64,000 bases of DNA from Pocillopora damicornis (taxonomy: Eukaryota), in the NCBI RefSeq assembly GCF_003704095.1, contig NW_020847344.1, positions 434,001-498,000 on the forward strand, given 5' to 3'. Shown here piece after piece: positions 11,647 to 22,999 of this stretch (positions are counted from its first letter, which is position 1; the number at the start of each line of letters is the position of its first letter). Position numbers and translations under genes: made by a program. A model generated the notes under the pieces. That model searched no databases. It worked only from the letters and a program-made list of their open reading frames with translations, and was not told the DNA's origin.

Positions 11647-13756
11647 AATACATAAATTTTAAGTAATATTAGACCTATGATTTCATATAATATATACACT
11701 TATATCAGTAACACAGTCCAGCCATAACATGGTCATATAGTTCAGCACACTAAGTTGAATTATGCTGGTGCAATACAAACCAATATGATAAAAATACGTC
11801 TTATTGCCTTAAAAATATATTTGTTATATTGTTCAGTAATCTAACTTCAATAAAATATGTTGACACACTTTAAAAATTAAGTTTGTATCACATACAGTAC
11901 TAAGATGCTTTCCACCTCTATAAAAAAAATTATTACTCTTCAAAACTTCTACACATCCAGTAAAGAAATAGACGGAACTTCTACGTATGAAATCTCCTTT
12001 GATGCTGACTTTATAAGAAATAAGTAAATTTTTCCTATCCACTAAAAGGTTATTAGCTGAATCAATTTATCTTAGACCGATTTAAGTTTATAATTGAATA
12101 ATAACATCATCTTTTGAAAAAAAACGTGAATAGAACAAAAAGCGATACGATAATGTGGCAGTCCTCTAGTTTTTTTTTAGTAAAACCAAAAGTACCCAGA
12201 GGCCCGCGAGTATGAGTTTGTCACAATACAGTTACGAGATAACCTTACAAAGGCATTCTTATTATATGAGATCTTTTTAAGTTAACATGCTGACTATGAA
12301 AAGAAACCAGAAAATTACCCACTAAAAAGTCCTCAGACTAAACATCTTCTCCTAATCTGATAAAAAACCGAAACAATCAGTGGTTACAACGATGTTGGTG
12401 TTGTTAAAACTGTTACAAACACTCGACCAAAATCCATCATGCAACGGTGCAAGAAGTGCAATAAGTACAGACATAGGAATTGTCTAGCAATTCACAATTT
12501 TTGATAAACTTTACGTAGTAAATAACACATAAGGAAAAAAAAGCAAAGAAATGAATCCCCAAGCTGTGTTCTCTATCATTCATATTTCATTCTTTATAAG
12601 ACAATATTAAACTTTAGTTTTCAAACTCGTTTCATTTGTCATCTTCTACTAATATTGACAACTTTAAACTGTGGCAAATGTGGAAACAGTTAAATCAAAA
12701 CACGGTGGCTTTATAAAGAGGTTATTTCTTGACACTGTGGAGTAAACAGTTTCCACATGATACTAAGTAAAAAAAGTCATTATTTTGTTAAAAATACTTT
12801 TCTCAGATCGCTATTACTTGGAAAATAATCTTGATTAAAATTCAGCCGGTAGCAATGCTATAAAAGCTAGTTTCCTTTAGCTTAACCATTACTGTATCAA
12901 CCAAAGTATGTAAATAGAACTTTTTGGATGTAAAAATGCTACCACTACTGGTTACGTGTAAACACGATGGAAAACCCCTAAGTAGGCATTTTATCTCTTA
13001 CATAAAGTGAAATAAATTATAACTTTTTAAACATCTAATTAGATACTATTATAAGAAACATAAAAAAGTATTTAAAATTGGGGGATTCTTCACTGGAATG
13101 TTTTCAGGGAAGTTCATGAATTTCTGCTTAATGTAAGCTTGTACTTCACAATTTAACAAAATCCTGAAAACACAGTAACATTATAGACAGTGTTCCACTT
13201 ATGGAAACTACATCAATGTTAAAAACATAATTTTATAAAACATTTAACATAATTTCAAATATGCATGGCTGGACTGTGTTATTGATATTAAAGTATTGAG
13301 AATTGAACTAAATTGTAGGAAAAATGTTTCAACTTATACTTAATTCTAAAATAGACAAACAAAAAAACTGCTACCTTCACCTTGAAGAAAAAATTATCAC
13401 CCCGCAAGTCAGACATGGCAAAAAATTAGCCACAGATGACTGTCTTCCCACCTTAGTATGAGATACTTATCTGGAACAGATTAACCATGCCACCTTGTCA
13501 AAAAGTCCTAAAATATGACAGGACAAATGTATTGTGCTAAAGGAAGAGACATGTTGGGAAAGAAGGGTGTCTCTTTGAAGAACCTTTGAATACAATTCCT
13601 GTTTCCAAAGATTGCACATACCCAAATTTTCAATTGTTTCAGAAATACATCTTTTCACTTGCTGATATTATTTTGGGTGAGAAGAAGAAGGCAAAGAGAG
13701 CGAGAGAGAGAAAGAGTAAAGCTGGAAGGCAAACATGATGAAAGAAAATTAATGAT

Positions 13757-16700
13757 CTAGAAGAAATTTTTAACCACCAGTTTGATTTTCTTGCGGCACA
13801 CTGGACATTTCTTTTTTTCTTCCTTTAGTCTCTCCGCACATCCAATGCAACACACAAGATGACCAGTTCTTCCATGAACAATACTAGCATTTCGAGGTTG
13901 CGTCAAGCAAATTATGCACAAGTCAGGTGTAAACCCTGATGCAGAGTTTTCATTGTTGAAGTTCTGTAGCAAAGTTTTGCTGGGATTTTCAGCTTTTGAT
14001 GTAGTGTGATTTGAAGCATGAGACAGTCTTTCAGTATTCTCCTTTACTGATGAAGATGAACCCTCAATATATGATGCAAGATTAGGAAGTGGCACAACTG
14101 TTGATAATGCCACTGTTGAGGATGGATGGTCAATGGTTGGTGTAACGGCAAGTGACGAAGATTTTTGAAGAGAATGTGAGCATGATTTGTCTGTTGATCC
14201 TGTTAAATCTATATTAGGTTCTGAAGTCAATCTATAAATAGAAAAGAGAAATGTAAAAATACCTTAGATAGTACTGCTTCCATATTGGTTGTGGTTATGT
14301 CAAGCTATCATGAACCTGAGTTTCGGACTCAATTCAAACACCTCAAATCAAAACTTACTGTCGAGTTACTGAAAATGAACAGATAGATTCCATGTTGCTG
14401 TGCCTGTTTGGCAAAAGATCACAGATGACATCACAATGTGGAAAACAAAAAGGGACATACAATGTACAGCCAAGTGTGTCACTGATGTTCTTGCCACATC
14501 ATAAAGTCTTCTGTAATCTTTAACTGTACAGACCCTCAACAACATTGAAATTCTAAAAAAGCAAAATGTTGATAATGATGATGTCATCTATGTGTCCATC
14601 CTCCAATACCCAGTCAAAATGCATGTAAAACTACAAATTAAACTGAATGTGTACAGACCTTTTCAATGTAGGCAGCCAGGCATGTCTCTCAATCCAGCAA
14701 CGAGCACATCGGGGAGAAAATGGATGGTTTTTCAAGTCACAATGTGAGCATGCCCAAAAGTCATCTTCATCAAATTCTGAATCAGATTCCCTATCCCCTT
14801 CATACTCATCTCCTCCTTCAGCCCCAGGATCCTCTTCTGAACTGGTTATATTTTCTTATAGAGAACAGTAAAAGCCAATGAGTATTGAGTTCAAATACTG
14901 TTACATATCTACCTCAATTCTGTTTTTTCTCTGTTCTGTCTGTTTTACTGTGGTAAAAGTTACTTGGGCATCTCAAAGGTTTATCCAAAATTTCACGTAA
15001 TTCAACTTGTGAAAATGCCTTTGCACTAAAATGTACACGTTGAACTCTGCAGCTCAATATCTCTTGCTCTGTACTAAACAAACCATCCCAGACAACACTT
15101 TGAATCTGCCCCTCTAGAAGGATGGGAAGAAACATTCCATGGAAATTAAATATAATTACAATTTTGGTTCCTTTGACTTCACATTTATTTCTGATAAATG
15201 TTGGCAAGTTGGTGATTCCAGCAGAAGACTTATGTACCATAAGTTCCCTCTTATATGTTCTTCAACCAACTGCTTAAAAATGCAAACAATGTTTACTATC
15301 ACAAACCAGTATCACTTTCATCGTCATCTTCCTCTTCTTCCTCAGGTTCTTCTGTGTCAGAATCAGGAGGCTCATATTCCACAGTCTCAACATCTCCTAC
15401 AACAAAATAAATACACATCAGCCTATCATAGTTAAGTAAGAAATTGACCAAAAAAAAAAGGGGCTGCACCCCTTCCTAAAAGGTTGCATGTACCTCATCT
15501 GTAACCAACCCTTGCTCTTTACAAAAATGACAAATCAGATGAGTCACTTTCAAATATTACTGACGTAAAAAGATAAGTTTACAAATTATCACTTATTAGG
15601 AGAAATTACAGCTGATCTTTATAGATCCCTCAAAGTAAATTTTAGTCTTCCCTTCTTTACAGCTCAAGTGCACAAAAGTAACATTATTTCAGCAAAGCAG
15701 TACTTAACCCTTTGACTCTAATGAGAGACCAAGACAGAATTTCTCCTTACAATATCAATACAAAATCAAGTAGATTACTGATGAGAGTAAATAAAAATAT
15801 GAATTAGGGGTTTATTGGTTGATTTAATGCCAAAGCCCCCTACTAACATGATAAGAATATGAAGGCAGACAGTATAGAGAATTACTAATATGATCACCGG
15901 AGTGAAAAGGTTAAATGTTGCAGGTTTTAGGAAGATGCTAACTTGCATACCATTCAGAAAAAAAAGATCATCTTCAGAGTCAGTCACAATAGCAGTCACA
16001 GCAGACTCGTAACCTTTCACAAAGTAAACTGTGCTGGATGATTCAGACACTTCACTCTCACTTTCTGATGCTCTTGTTGCTTTGAACCCAATACACCATG
16101 GAATTCGCTCTGGAGGACTGTAACTACCTTTCACCCCAAGAACATCTGGAAAACAAGAAAAACACTCCAGGTTAAAGTTCAATATGACAGTCAGATTTAT
16201 TTTTACTATGAAACATACGAGTAACACACTTAGTAGAGTTGTCTACAATTGCAGAAATTAATAAAGACATGGTTTTATACCACAACTAGTGTGTATTTCA
16301 CTCTAAATACACCAGCATTAAGAATCATGATTTTATAATGAAACTAACTGGCACCATGACAATTAAGTGGTCTGTTTATGAATGATGTTCTAATGACATC
16401 ATGCACAGCAAGATATCATATACTTTGGTCTTGGCCTTCAAAGGTAGAGAAGGGAATTTTCAAATCAAATACCCAAAAACAGGGAACACTTAAGAACATA
16501 ATCGGTTCAACTTTATCAACAAAACTGTTCATAGTTGAAATTGCATCTCAGGGCACAACCTTTGGCAGAAGACAAATATTTTTTTAGCAGTTAAATTCCT
16601 TCATAAAATAACCAAATATTTTTTAAATTACAAATAATGAGATTGGATCAGTTTATCCAATTGAAACTAATTTCCTTTTGAAGCAAGAAAGCTGACCACA

Positions 16701-19700
16701 AAAATACATCTAAAGAAAGTATCTCCATACCTGTCCATGATCCTCGTTTTCTTTTTCTACCTTCCACACTTTTCTTCTTACCAAAGCCTCCTGTATTATT
16801 TAAAACAATTAAGGTATAATGGGTCTTTCAGTAACCTGCCAAAACTGAATGTGGGCCACAAACTGGCATGACAGCATTTCAACCTTATTGATCTCTTCAA
16901 ATCTCATAACAGAATTATATCATTACTTGCATTTCACATTCAAATGCTGTAAACATTACTCTGAAAGAACAATATATTTATACCTTGTGGTTAACTCTCC
17001 TTACAGAGAACATTTAGTCAGATTGCCATAAGAGGGTTAAAGATAAACATTCTGCTCAGCACTACCATAATATTTACTGTAAGAGGGTGCTTAACAATAG
17101 ATGACAATGTTTTTCATCCTATACTAAATTGCAGGAAGTACATAGTTGCTTTATTAAGTTAAGAGAGAACACTTTTTCACACGCACTGAGTTGGTATGTT
17201 CAAGGATGGCTTAATGACATGTTGCAAAAACATGTCTGTGATAATAAAAATGAAAAATGTTAGATGCTAGTTATAACATGCTCATAGTCATGGTGCTAAT
17301 TTGGACACTATAAACATTGAACATTGGTTACCTTGCTCATTGTCTGAACTATCACACTGTGGACCAATCCGTATCTCACTAGAGAAATCAAATAAATAAA
17401 CATTCATGAATATAAATTAGTACAGCTTTAACTAACTGATGAATTAAGTAACACTCCTTCAAATTGGTCCATGAATTTCATTAAAGATCTGTTTTCTTGA
17501 ATGTATGGTGAGGTCATATGATTGTAATCTGACAAACAGAAACAATAGAATTGAGTTACAACAAAAAGAAGGTGGGTGAAAGGATTAACCTTTGAGCTCT
17601 GAGATGTTTTCATAACAGTTGGTTTTGGAGATCCCAACTTTTCCATGCACAGGGTCACACAAACAACAAAACATAAATAACTTGTTTAGTTAAATCATAC
17701 TAAAAGCCTCACATAAATAACATTAAATTAAGAGACAATTATTGGTACAAGGAAGCTTGTCACATCATGGATAGATGTCCAAAATCTTAATGCAATTTTC
17801 AGCAAAGTTATCATCTCAGAGAGAGCTTGCCTCTATTTTAAGGTACATTGACATAAATAACCATGGCCCCTAAAAATTGTGTTCAGTACAGTTTCCAAAC
17901 CATGAATCTTTCACCCTTTTCCAAAATCTCTCCATGTACATCCAATTCACAAACCACATATGTGTACACTGAATTTCACCTTTTAAATCAATAAGGGTGA
18001 AACATAAAGTGCACCTTTTAAGTGCTACCAAGTGTCTTACTCCTTAACAAACAAGGGGGAATTTTAGTCTATTTTGACAATCTTGGCATGATCAAATCCC
18101 TTATTCTCATAATTAACTAGTATTGGTAAGGAAATAAAGGGAGGAAGGTTTGTCCAGCCGCTTGGGACTTTTAAAAAACTGCATGAAATAGATGTACAAT
18201 ATAATAGTTTGCACTGCACATTAAAAATTCCAAGCAGTTGTTCCAGTTATGTCTTATGCAGGGCTTGCGCATTATGTTCTGTTGAAAGAATGAAATAAAC
18301 ATTTTTACTCCACCCTGATAACCCAGGGAGCATGCCAAGGCCAGCCCAAGAAGAGCCCTTATCTTTTTGCTGTAGAAAAAAAAAACAGGCATGGGGCATT
18401 AAAATAGCATTATAAAAATAGAGAAAAATTTGCATAAGCTAATTGGTGCAATGCTGTGCTGCTCCAACACTAATTCACCAGTTTTCATGAAGTCCTACAA
18501 TAAATTCATGACCTATGCTTTTTTGCACACCAGTTTGCTAGAACCTCCACTATTTATCAATTCACTGTGCTTAATGAATATAACCTAATTGGGGGATTGC
18601 ATTTATAGCAGTGAATGCATCAAGGAAAAAATCTGGTAGCCTAATTCAGATGCAGATAAAAAAAATGTGAGTTTGTATAATTTAGCAACATATAACATTT
18701 AAACTCATATTATTTGAAAGCAGTGAACCAAATCTAAATGAACGGGTGAGATTGTTTCGCTGGAGTGACCACGTTTTTCTAATAGCACTGGGGCAGTTGT
18801 TCAGACTCGTTCGATTAACAAGCCTCGACTTGTCCTAGGTATCAATACCGTAGTGATGCAGCCATCAGGATGGAATGCGAATGTCATTTATTGGCGATCG
18901 TAGATCACGAACGACATCTTTAAGCCTCTGTACCGTGCATTTAACAGTTCGGTAACTTATTTTGCACCACGCTCTCCTAGGTCAACAACATGTAAATGCA
19001 AATAAAATAACACGAGGTCTTGCTTTGTGAAGCGAAAAGCAGTGTGCTGTTGACGAGATAAAAGTATTGCAGCGTTTATCAGACGATGTAAGCCACTAAG
19101 TACCGAAAGATTTTGAGCTCTTAATATCGCTAAAAGAATGTCAAGATCGGCAAGAAGATGAAAAAAAGAAAAAAAAAACAATAAACCCGATCATATCACA
19201 CAACACACTGATCGAATGTAAGATGAGGGCAAAACAGTGGGTTGGTTCCTGGGTCACTTGGACGAAAAATGAGAAGAATAATTCAGAATCTTAACAGCAA
19301 GGCTCTTATGATAACAAACAGATGTTCTGAGGTCTGATTGAGAGGGAAAGGAAAGTAAAAACAGAGATGCCAAGAAATTAGATACGGTCTGGCGTTGAGC
19401 GTGGGAAAACGACCTTTAACATTTTGCTATAGCCGCGTCAGTCGTCGGCTAGAGCCATAATCCGGGCTTTATTTCAATTTGCGTAGTGCGATTGAGGAAT
19501 AATAATTCTTCACAGATAAGTAGAATGAGTCTTCAACAAATACACATGTTTGAGATACCTCCGACGAAAATGAAAGGCCGTAACGTGTAACTCGACCTCT
19601 TCACATGGGACAACAGATTATGTTCATGTAACTCGCGTATTAATGAATGGACAAAACCTTTCTTGAACAATCAACTCATCACCTAAGATTCACTGACCTC

Positions 19701-20361
19701 TAAAATTCGAGTGAAATTCTTACGTTTCTAAATAGCTAAGGGCGCGAAAATTCTCGGCTTACATTTCTCAAGTGTATTTTAGCGTGGGTACCATTCTGTG
19801 AAGATTTCGGATATGTCCTTTCACGTCCCAAGATATAGCGCGGCGAGAACTGTGGTATTCACAGCAATGGAAAACAGGGAAACGGCAAAATTACTTAATT
19901 AAAATGTATCCCGAGTTAAATGTTTGCCGTGGATTTTGTAATCAATGAGAGATTTCGCCATAACTTTTCCATGCGATTACAAAAAAATATTCACGGTTGA
20001 ATTTTACATTCAAAATATTGCAAAACAAATGTCTGTTTAGCTGACTATCACAATCACATTATTCAAGCAACCCTAGCGCAAAATTACCAATAAAATCAAG
20101 GAAATAACTACAGAGAGCAAAAAGGTTGGGCTTACAAACAACAGCAAGATGTGAATTGCGGACAAGCCGACTTCGCTCTGAAGGAAGTTATAGTAACACT
20201 ACTTATCGATACACTTGGGGCTCCCGATGACAAAATTTATCAAACAACTAGACTCATAAATAGTTGAAAGTACAGTCTAACTTACCAAGCCTTCTGCTCG
20301 ACCAAAGCGCCATCCATAACCTTCTTATCAGTCCCTTCACTCCGCGCTCACCGATACACAT
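13757..20361 (-). CDS. MDM2: MDM2/MDM4-family E3 ubiquitin ligase (single ancestral-type MDM)
   Basis: Last exon 14231-13757 has the MDM-type C2H2C4 RING (CIICLTQPRNASIVHGRTGHLVCCIGC...CPVC) with an aromatic C-terminal tail (KNFF). Exon 14854-14659 has a RanBP2 zinc finger (WACSHCDLKNHPFSPRCARCW). Acidic exon 15396-15308 (VEYEPPDSD...EEEEDDDES); exon 16146-15951; NLS-like exon ~16790-16731 (RKRKR); exons ~17378-17332, 17528-~17437 and 20361-20286. The start codon and 5' exons are less certain. Confidence 0.88.
15708..15910. mobile_element. TTAA-flanked piggyBac-like MITE in an MDM intron
   Basis: TTAA|ccctttgactc ... gagtgaaaagg|TTAA. Confidence 0.7.
18816..18835. promoter_or_regulatory. Candidate intronic p53-family response element (18/20)
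   Basis: TAACAAGCCT CGACTTGTCC, zero spacer, both CWWG cores intact, in MDM intron 1. Confidence 0.5.
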
Positions 20362-20693
20362 GAACTTTCCTGTCCTTGCGTTCTGTCCATGGACTTCGAA
20401 GACAAATGCTTCTACACTTAGGAGAATTTCAGACTGATCCTCATCCAAACTTTCAGCTGAAACACTGTTAGATTTTCTAAAACAATTCTCTTCTGTTGAG
20501 AAAAACCTCTCTCGAACAAAAGGAATTTAGAAATAAACGACAAAACCAGGTTTAAATTGGTATCAAAAAGAAATAATGTTGTTCAGTATTCGGTTCGAAA
20601 CCAGTAGTTCGAACCCTCGATGGACTTGAATTTCTCCCAAATGGCGCCGGAAGCTGGGCACACCGCACCGGATACCAAGGCTTGACAATGAGC

Positions 20694-20713
20694 GAACTTG
20701 TCCAAGCATGTCC
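20694..20713. promoter_or_regulatory. Perfect p53/p63/p73 response element in the MDM promoter
   Basis: GAACTTGTCC AAGCATGTCC is a 20/20 match to RRRCWWGYYY x2 with zero spacer. Confidence 0.85.
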
Positions 20714-20720
20714 TGATTAT

Positions 20721-20838
20721 CATTGGCTGTTTAAATTTTAATCTTAGTGCTGATTGGTCTGTTTTTGACAGGTTTCTTTTAGAGCTATTTCACTTTCGCG
20801 CGCTTTTTATCAGCTAGTTATCAATGGCAATTTCGCGC
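20721..20838. promoter_or_regulatory. MDM promoter module: two CCAAT boxes (about 20722 and 20753) and two E2F sites TTTCGCGC (20794, 20831)
   Basis: Direct motif matches clustered next to the p53 element; YY1-like ATGGCG at 20641. Confidence 0.6.
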
Positions 20839-22999
20839 GCATCAGTGCCCTTGTTGACCTTATTTTGTCAGTCGGGGAGCTTTCGCACACCAACCGCAAA
20901 TTGTTTTGCTTGAACAGGTCGAAACATGAATTTTGACCTGAAAGAGAAATTTCTGTAAAAAGAAAACGAATTTCTTTTTTTTTAGAAATGAATAGCTATG
21001 AATCAAGGCTTCTTCAAAAGCCTTCAAGAGCAACTTTTTACAGTCAAAATTAGAGCAGACAATTCCAAAGTTTGTTGTACTCAAAAAGTGGCGTGAGCAA
21101 CAATGAAAATAAACTTTATCATTCCACCTTAATTACGGCGCCCTTCAAGTAAATTATCCTAAATTGGATGGTTACGTGATTAACATAAATGCAAACATTT
21201 TAATGTCGCTTGGCATCAATTTATCCCCTCTGCTTTAGTGGGAATGTTTTCGCAGCCAAATATTTTCATTAAGACTAGTCCCTCTTGGTATGTTTGCAAT
21301 TCGTGGATTTTTTAAAATCTATGCGATGAAAATGTGAAATCTGTTTCCCCTCTTACTGTTTTCTCCTTAGTACAAAATTTCAATCGGCATTTATTGAAAC
21401 CTGTGATCCCTCGTAGGGATGAAATAAGGGGACAAGAGTGCAACCTTTTTTTTTAGGGACAGACGTTTTCATTGATTGATTGATTGGATTTTTTTAGTTT
21501 GGGGGTGGGGTGTGGGGGGAGAGGGAAGGAGGAGACTGCAAGTTTGAAATGCGAGAAACGAGGTTGAGCATTCCTGTGAGAAACCTTATCAAATACCCCA
21601 CCGAGGCTTGATGATCGAGGCAGGGAACCTTGCCATTCCTTCTGTGCATCTGTTGGATTGACAAGCTTGGAGAGATCTTGTTGTTTTAGCTTCGTCCTTT
21701 TAGTTTTCAGACACGTCTTTACACATCATAGGAAAAACCTCTTTTTTTATTTGACACCTTGGCCTTTCTGTGAGTTTAGGTTTGTGGTTGTCGAAATAAA
21801 TTTTACAAATTCGTCGGAGAAAAATCAACATATCCCTCGGTTTTTCAATCGATAGAGCACGTAGCGAATAAATTTTCAGCATTTTAAAAACTATACCGAC
21901 AATTTTAGAGCCAGTAGAAAGTAGAAAGCAATGCTAAAACAAGAAGAAATATTCATTTAACCTATGCCTAGGACAATGAGTTTGAAAAATTGAGAATAAT
22001 GCTACCTGCGGAGTAAAAATACAAGGCGCTTGGACGACTGACGAAAGCGAGCAAGATCCTCTTTTAAAAACCAGCAACTCCAATCCAGTTCAGTCGAGTT
22101 GCACTTCAGAGAACGGTATAGTCGTTTTTATGCCTACATTGCGGTTTCCGAGCTAAAGATGAAAACTCTCAGTTATGATTTAACGTCACGGTTGACAGAA
22201 TTTATTTTCAAACTAATGGAAGCTTGATCTTTCTGAGTTGCTCGGGTCATCGAAAACATGTCATGGCAGGAGCCGGTAAAACTCAACTGACCGTAAAATT
22301 TTGGCCGGAGTACCATATAATAATTACCTTGCTTGTTCGAGCCACACCGGGGAATATTGGCGCTAGGTTAATAAGTAGTTATTACTGTCGCGCAAAATGT
22401 TGGGCTCGTTTTCTTGAGCGCAGTTGTCGATTTATTGTCCAATATGTGACGAGCAACTTCATGAACATACAGTGATAAGTGAAAAATGTTGTAAGAATGT
22501 GAAACTTGAAAACAATAATTAAGAATATGTATGAGTTTATTGCGGTCAGGTTGATAAATATGACACTGTTAATGAATTTGTTGATTTCATGAGAATCGAC
22601 ATAACATAAGAGGAAAGTTCGTTTATCATAGAAAGTATCACTTTTATAATATGATTACCACTTTATGCAGTAAAGATAACATGCAGATATCAACGAACGA
22701 TAAAAATATAGGATATAAGAGATTTTTGAAGACTGAGAGTGTGCTACCTCAGATTAATAGTGATCGTAAAGGGATGATCAATATTAATTTCATTTTAAAC
22801 GAATATTTAAGGTGATAAAATTACCCTATAAAAGCATACCAATATCCAAATTAAAAAGAGCATTAAAATTTTATAAGCAATCCTGGTGTAAAATTCAAAA
22901 ACTAATCGGTGATGATAACAAAACAATTATACGGAGATGAATTTTTGTAAATATTATTCATCCCAATTTTCAACCAAAGGACACATCTCCTATGCTGTT

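Follow-up and report, generated by a model that had tools for sequence, protein, structure and literature searches.

A predicted p53-family response element conserved in the proximal MDM promoter of stony corals and sea anemones

In vertebrates, MDM2 is a textbook p53 target, and the two p53 elements of its P2 promoter lie in intron 1, immediately before exon 2. The generic consensus site for p53, p63 and p73 is said to go back to el-Deiry in 1992. Among non-bilaterian animals, three candidate elements located 320-540 bp upstream (TXRe320, TXRe350 and TXRe540) have been described at Mdm2 of Trichoplax adhaerens, where they bind Tap53 in vitro and were offered as evidence that the p53-MDM feedback loop is ancient (Siau et al. 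2016, PMC5039725). In cnidarians, lysates of Nematostella and its protein nvp63 bind the canonical p53 consensus, and nvp63 transactivates from it, although the oligonucleotide and the reporter employed were artificial consensus constructs and no natural cnidarian target site was defined (PMC1964547). Published surveys have reported that cnidarian MDM is devoid of the SWIB domain, and published analyses doubt a contact between SWIB and the transactivation domain (TAD) in these animals (PMC5543598, PMC10303687); the surveys concluded that cnidarian p53 is probably not regulated by MDM, having found neither a p53-binding domain nor an MDM-binding motif. Whether cnidarian MDM belongs to the p53 pathway is an unsettled question, and it is this question that the element described herein addresses. 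Full-text searches of the open-access literature revealed no earlier description of a p53 element in the MDM promoter of any cnidarian.

As in the vertebrate P2 promoter, the coral locus possesses decamer pairs of the canonical RRRCWWGYYY type next to the start of an MDM transcript as well as a second p53-like cluster in the first intron, and the target is the orthologous RING E3 ligase with an acidic region and a RanBP2 zinc finger. In contrast to P2, however, the strongest coral element is situated at the 5'-most promoter together with E2F-like sites and CCAAT boxes rather than internally, the only alternative exon observed precedes the intronic cluster, SWIB is absent from the coral MDM, and the function of the coral element is predicted from its sequence. 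The Trichoplax and cnidarian elements are alike in their non-bilaterian setting and in their distance from the MDM coding region, which is 353-396 bp in the cnidarians. Those of Trichoplax, however, merely resemble the consensus, the motif applied there allowing half-sites up to 13 nt apart, and are supported by binding in vitro without cross-species conservation (PMC5039725), whereas the cnidarian element, known from sequence alone, combines a perfect match without spacer with deep conservation; furthermore, Trichoplax Mdm2 contains SWIB, unlike the coral protein. With respect to the generic consensus, the fit was complete (20/20) and the DNA-contact residues of the cnidarian p53 family are kept, in line with the consensus binding of nvp63 (PMC1964547). 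The initial annotation of this DNA had proposed that the induction of MDM by p53 predates the bilaterians; this idea is not new, as it had been published for Trichoplax (PMC5039725). The element proved to be conserved in both corals and anemones.

The analyzed DNA, hereafter the window, is a 64-kb stretch of the Pocillopora damicornis genome (C3979:434001-498000 of the genome searched, which comprises 234.35 Mb in 4393 contigs). As originally quoted, the 20-mer GAACTTGTCCAAGCATGTCC at 20694-20713 matched RRRCWWGYYYRRRCWWGYYY at 20 of 20 positions with a spacer of zero. On the gene strand, it reads GGACATGCTTGGACAAGTTC and consists of two abutting decamers with the cores CATG and CAAG, and it therefore conforms to the definition of a p53 element as two RRRCWWGYYY decamers 0-13 bp apart. 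No other perfect match to RRRCWWGYYYRRRCWWGYYY was present in the window, and none of 100 dinucleotide shuffles contained one; the expectation recomputed from the window composition was 0.0029 perfect sites per 64 kb, in good agreement with the 0.003 estimated in the initial annotation. When up to two mismatches were allowed, four p53-type sites were found in the window, which was no excess over chance. Throughout the genome, 25 perfect sites were detected as compared with 14 for a reversed-pattern control and 10.6 expected from composition, and the chance of a perfect site in any given 1-kb promoter zone was calculated to be approximately 1e-4. A repeat or transposon origin of the element was ruled out, since the 301-bp promoter stretch around it is single-copy in the genome. 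The strongest consensus-like sites in the genome were GGGCATGCCTGGGCATGTCC at C3549:198991 and GAACATGCCTGAACATGCCT at C3883:552096, and a further perfect p53-type site (C3552:83198-83217) lies on the same contig as the best p53-family gene (C3552:143503-145100), at a distance of about 60 kb. An ORF-level Pfam search beside 10 other perfect sites returned a BTB/TLDc fragment only and no canonical p53 target.

The MDM gene lies on the minus strand, and hence "upstream" denotes higher coordinates. As summarized in Table 1, its transcript structure was determined between 16000 and 21900 by means of contigs assembled from four coral RNA runs, which came from four studies. Exon-1 contigs from three of the studies began at 20661, 20631 and 20605 and were spliced from 20286 to 17378, which placed an MDM transcript start beside the element, as had been anticipated, in the regulatory region of an expressed gene. 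The element is located about 33 bp above the furthest of these 5' ends, and no spliced-mRNA contig in the four runs covered it; as assembled (Logan) contigs cannot fix the transcription start, its distance from the element is bounded only. With regard to translation, the element occupies the region 377-396 bp upstream of the conserved start codon at 20317. The distance of about 330 bp given previously corresponds to the ATG at 20361, which is indeed 333 bp away, but this ATG was rejected as the MDM start because it is an upstream ATG. The N-terminus encoded from 20317 matches those of the Pocillopora verrucosa, P. meandrina and Stylophora proteins, and this start codon and the exon-1 GT donor just below 20286 are conserved in Porites, Orbicella and the coral contig L032. 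Upstream ATGs occur in the 5'UTR at 20390 and 20361, one of which opens a 17-codon frame (20390-20340); they are possible sites of translational control. The segment at 18849-19366, having a GT donor at 18848, either serves as a minor first exon, used alternatively, or results from cryptic splicing of the pre-mRNA.

Table 1. Features of the Pocillopora MDM locus (positions in the window) and related features of the compared hexacorallian loci.
Feature	Position	Strand	Remarks
Second E2F-like site GCGCGCGAAA	20831-20840	-	consensus only
E2F-like block TAAAAAGCGCGCGAAAGTGAAAT	20787-20809	-	23 nt invariant in 4 corals; best-conserved promoter 20-mer
CCAAT boxes (2)	20753-20757, 20722-20726	-	directly upstream of p53 element
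Promoter-proximal p53-family response element (predicted)	20694-20713	-	GGACATGCTTGGACAAGTTC on gene strand
MDM exon 1	20286-20661	-	5'UTR of at least 344 nt plus first 10 codons
ETS-like CTTCCGG	20647-20653	-	conserved columns in 4-coral alignment; consensus only
Conserved block TTGGGAGAA	20632-20640	-	downstream of p53 element, near transcript start
MDM start codon	20317-20315	-	encodes MDGALVEQKA
MDM intron 1	17379-20285	-	2907 bp, GT..AG; 17378/20286 joint in 3 runs
Minor alternative exon in intron 1	18849-19366	-	joint 18849 to 17378 in one run only (X9)
Intron-1 p53-like element GGACAAGTCGAGGCTTGTTA	18816-18835	-	2 mismatches, both cores intact
Degenerate second intron-1 element	18793-18812	-	follows 18816-18835
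MDM exon 2	17331-17378	-	splice joints in 4 runs; peptides of exons 2-3 EIRIGPQCDSSDNEQG, GFGKKKSVEGRKRKRGSWT
MDM exon 3	16731-16789	-	splice joints in 4 runs
MDM exon 4	from 16145 downwards	-	remaining coding exons 13760-16145
MDM acidic run	15302-15475	-	
MDM RanBP2 zinc finger	14634-14855	-	Zn_ribbon_RanBP E 2.7e-5
MDM RING and MDM-type C-terminus	13760-14263	-	zf-C3HC4_3 E 1.1e-12
Pocillopora promoter site	-396 from ATG		0 mismatches; GGACATGCTTGGACAAGTTC
Porites lobata promoter site	-381 from ATG		0 mismatches; GGGCATGCTTGGACAAGTTC
Orbicella faveolata and L032 promoter site	-377 from ATG		0 mismatches; GGACATGCTCGGGCAAGTTC
Nematostella promoter site (L027:9648-9667)	-353 from ATG		1 mismatch; GAACATGCACAGACAAGTCT
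Actinia promoter site	-368 from ATG		2 mismatches; GAACGTGTACGGACAAGTCT
Actinia SWIB exons	L028:10420-10500, 13208-13345		interval equivalent to coral intron 1

The gene product, which had been put down as a putative cnidarian MDM, was identified as an MDM orthologue from its C-terminal RING, RanBP2 zinc finger and acidic run, all of which are shared with the MDM2/MDM4 family. For the searches, full-length database proteins of close relatives (P0236, P0154, P0031 and P0206) were used rather than a spliced model, and the peptides encoded by exons 2 and 3 matched P0236. The Pocillopora verrucosa counterpart has been annotated as "E3 ubiquitin-protein ligase Mdm2", with P. damicornis RMX57735.1 falling in the same cluster, and relatives named Mdm2 or Mdm4 were found in at least 10 cnidarian species, including members of Stylophora, Acropora, Orbicella, Montipora, Oculina, Porites, Nematostella and Actinia; vertebrate MDM2 was recovered among the relatives at an E-value of 1e-21. 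RMX57735.1 (387 aa) contains an extra 23-residue exon from intron 1 (18174-18398, minus strand), for which no spliced RNA contig was found and which is absent from the 364-aa Pocillopora verrucosa protein.

As candidate binders, three loci in the genome matched the p53 DNA-binding domain (PF00870), and three p53-family genes have been reported in Nematostella as well. An exon of the best locus was aligned with the structures of p63, p73 and p53 and was found to keep the equivalents of R248, R249, R273, C275, C277, R280 and R282, so that this organism encodes p53-family proteins with conserved DNA-contact residues. How strongly cnidarian p53-family proteins activate transcription is uncertain, since published analyses have reported that they are devoid of the MDM-binding transactivation motif (PMC5543598).

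Along the gene strand, the promoter comprises the second E2F-like site (20831-20840), the E2F-like block, the two CCAAT boxes, the p53 element, the ETS-like site and TTGGGAGAA, in this order, the factor names of the E2F-like, CCAAT and ETS-like sites being assigned by consensus only. ACCAAT and CCAATG were invariant in the four corals, and one CCAAT box could be aligned in all five species. Sites of the GCGGGAAA type were found at the equivalent place in Nematostella and Actinia, and in both anemones an E2F-type site and one CCAAT box precede the p53 element.

We thus propose that in this coral the 20-mer serves as a p53-family response element, functional and kept by selection, within the proximal promoter of MDM, the single cnidarian orthologue of Mdm2/Mdm4. 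In the proposed mechanism, a tetramer of one of the three coral p53/p63-like proteins would bind the abutting decamers 30-50 bp above the transcript start and would act beside the two NF-Y-type CCAAT boxes and the E2F-like sites, whereby MDM transcription would be raised once the p53 family is activated by UV, for instance, or by DNA damage of another kind. The second and weaker group of p53-like decamers, located in intron 1, is likely to assist in this. The observations on which this proposal is based are the sequence match, the place by the transcript start, the conservation with its substitution pattern, and the p53-family genes with intact contact residues, and from these we infer binding, activation and stress dependence, as well as any feedback that MDM may exert on a p53-family protein. 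Taken together, the 20-mer is most likely a p53-family site, and the explanation as a whole, in which it drives MDM upon p53-family activation, seems probable to us.

Binding by the p53 family might instead serve a constitutive or developmental control of p63-like character in germ or proliferating cells rather than a stress-induced feedback, an alternative that we consider unlikely but by no means negligible. The conserved E2F-like and CCAAT neighbors are typical of proliferation-linked promoters, MDM mRNA was present in all four RNA runs, which were of unstressed or field material, and the absence of SWIB from coral MDM leaves the classical negative feedback loop without assurance; however, constitutive expression through E2F and NF-Y can coexist with an inducible boost by p53, and the element is a perfect site without spacer and with a CATG core, a type that goes with strong inducible activation in vertebrates. 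The behavior of nvp63 in Nematostella points both ways, since its expression is concentrated in the germ-cell compartment but its activity is raised by UV (PMC1964547). Stress-induced activation of MDM would appear to be the likeliest use of the element, and we lean toward it.

The conservation of the element, for which an alignment of MDM promoters had been recommended in the initial annotation, was assessed within Hexacorallia by comparison with the orthologous loci of Porites lobata (L025), Orbicella faveolata (L029), Nematostella vectensis (L027), Actinia tenebrosa (L028) and the coral contig L032. Orthologous sites were found in all five of these sequences, the overall range being -353 to -396 from the ATG: the element is perfect in the three further corals and carries one or two mismatches in the two sea anemones, at the same ATG distance. 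No other site with up to two mismatches was present in the 3 kb upstream of the ATG in any species compared. The species are related, however, and the five occurrences accordingly do not amount to five independent events. The L032 promoter is 82% identical to that of Orbicella. Porites and Pocillopora represent the deepest split among the stony corals, and anemones and corals diverged around the Cambrian. Whereas the coral promoters were otherwise 50-58% identical in pairwise comparison, the element showed 17 invariant columns of 20 in the four-coral alignment as compared with a mean of 5.6, and it was the second-best conserved 20-mer in the 940-bp promoter after the E2F-like block. In the anemones, the element could be aligned but the flanking sequence could not.

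The pattern of substitution was in good agreement with the consensus. In the five-species alignment, the core C, G, C and G were invariant, as was the whole CAAGT of the second half-site, and 8 of the 10 variable positions changed solely within the purine or pyrimidine class; both decamers stayed in register in six sequences from five genera, in which the cores were thus fixed and the flanks degenerate. Such a pattern is what selection for p53-type binding predicts, and not what is expected of a flank-reading factor. In Actinia, one core reads CGTG and a purine occupies a pyrimidine position of the flank, so that this site would be weaker by the p53 consensus. Considering these features, the element is almost certainly under selection, although part of its conservation could reflect other constraints of a dense and generally conserved core promoter. 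The possibility that the element belongs to a divergent upstream gene was ruled out, as the upstream neighbors vary by species (DUF4500 in Porites, DUF829 in the anemones and a PLA2 gene in Orbicella), whereas the element keeps a constant distance from the MDM ATG. The wider neighborhood shows conservation: WDR11 is found on the upstream side of MDM in both Porites and Nematostella, a gene with a CLAMP domain follows MDM in Porites and Actinia, the DUF829 gene is arranged divergently upstream in both anemones, and a reverse-transcriptase/integrase retroelement (L026:3886-7076) is inserted within the MDM region of the Porites-like coral contig L026.

The p53-like elements in the intron recur in a similar fashion. 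Pocillopora and Orbicella can be aligned around the intronic site and both have another decamer pair, degenerate in sequence, that follows after 3-5 bp, and intronic sites of similar sequence were found in L032, Porites and the Porites-like L026. Relative to the ATG, they lie at +1482 in Pocillopora, +1475 and +1499 in Orbicella and +1920 in Porites, and sites with a single mismatch occur in Nematostella (+1228, L027:11229-11248), Actinia (+1383) and L032. Every species compared therefore possesses a site with one or two mismatches between +1228 and +1920, located in intron 1 except in Actinia, where it sits between the two SWIB exons; the expectation per 3 kb is about 0.07 at two mismatches and 0.0045 at one. 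Nearly all p53-like sites of the 27-31-kb loci fall in the first 2.5 kb of MDM. In Pocillopora, the intronic element lies 14 bp downstream of the donor of the alternative exon, and an internal promoter of the P2 type acting through it was unsupported, as this sole alternative exon is upstream of the element.

These data also bear on the possibility that the promoter block is conserved for another factor or for the core promoter machinery, its fit to p53 being coincidental. The element is just 30-50 bp from the transcript ends, where core-promoter constraints act, and neighboring blocks without p53 likeness are conserved equally or more; such a block, however, would hardly follow p53 degeneracy in its substitutions, with fixed cores and flanks free within the purine or pyrimidine class, keep two decamers in register in six sequences, stay alignable between anemone flanks that are not, and be accompanied in every species by another p53-like cluster within the intron. 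We know of no other factor with such a 20-bp dyad consensus, and we consider a coincidental fit improbable. A chance match without function, which might be entertained as scanning many windows will meet such sites (about 11-14 perfect ones are expected genome-wide and 25 were seen), was ruled out by the cross-species conservation, given the odds of about 1e-4 of landing in the 1-kb MDM promoter zone and the recurrence of perfect sites at the same ATG distance in Porites, Orbicella and L032, and near-perfect ones in the two anemones, within promoters otherwise 50-58% identical or unalignable.

The proposed binding of a p53-family protein as the reason for this conservation raises the matter of the SWIB domain, which had been described as apparently missing. 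SWIB (PF02201) was detected neither on the window's contig nor in the coral or Nematostella MDM proteins, so that Pocillopora MDM has no N-terminal SWIB/MDM2 p53-binding domain, and tblastn as well as a six-frame search with a purpose-built HMM revealed no hidden SWIB exons in the loci of Pocillopora, Porites, Orbicella, L032 and Nematostella, which is in line with the published surveys (PMC5543598, PMC10303687). In contrast, isoform X1 of Actinia tenebrosa MDM (XP_031564139.1) carries SWIB (Pfam E 5.5e-10). The absence therefore holds for the corals and apparently for Nematostella but not for Actinia, and the "rewired loop" suggested in the initial annotation is accordingly confined to the former rather than applying to the whole phylum. 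As the Actinia orthologue has the domain, its absence from corals reflects lineage loss and not non-orthology; the group originally possessed SWIB, and stony corals, and apparently Nematostella as well, have lost it. The p53 element persists in the presence of SWIB (Actinia) as well as in its absence (corals and Nematostella).

On the reading of the 20-mer as a p53-family element, the transcriptional arm from p53 to MDM would date back at least to the ancestor shared by stony corals and sea anemones and would have been retained in corals despite the loss of SWIB, the pocket in which the p53 transactivation domain is bound. Cnidarians are thus very likely to place MDM under p53 control, including those whose MDM no longer possesses a p53-binding domain. 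Feedback of the coral MDM on a p53-family protein without SWIB is a more doubtful matter, to which we give rather less than even credence. Equally tentative is the idea that the transcriptional arm has been under selection for about half a billion years in stony corals after the contact between SWIB and TAD was lost, MDM then being a p53-induced effector E3 ligase. If this were true, MDM would target either the p53-family protein, with its acidic region or zinc finger meeting the DNA-binding core, or different substrates. It would then not be an inhibitor of the classical SWIB-dependent kind, and the ancestral SWIB-containing state would be represented by Actinia.

The interest of the element lies in the depth and precision of its conservation and in its decoupling from SWIB. 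Such deep conservation of a perfect p53 site beside the start of the MDM transcript speaks for a persisting connection between the p53 and MDM genes, at the transcriptional level at least. With its 20 bp, the element offers a precise target for mutation, binding and reporter tests in Nematostella, and the retention of SWIB in Actinia provides a natural comparison, within one phylum, of the loop with and without the protein contact. The element furthermore makes MDM a candidate for reading out directly how active the p53 family is in reef corals exposed to UV or heat stress; MDM2 has been listed among the heat-responsive genes of the octocoral Corallium rubrum (bioRxiv 10.1101/2025.05.12.653513), a weak hint and the sole cnidarian expression hint that we found.
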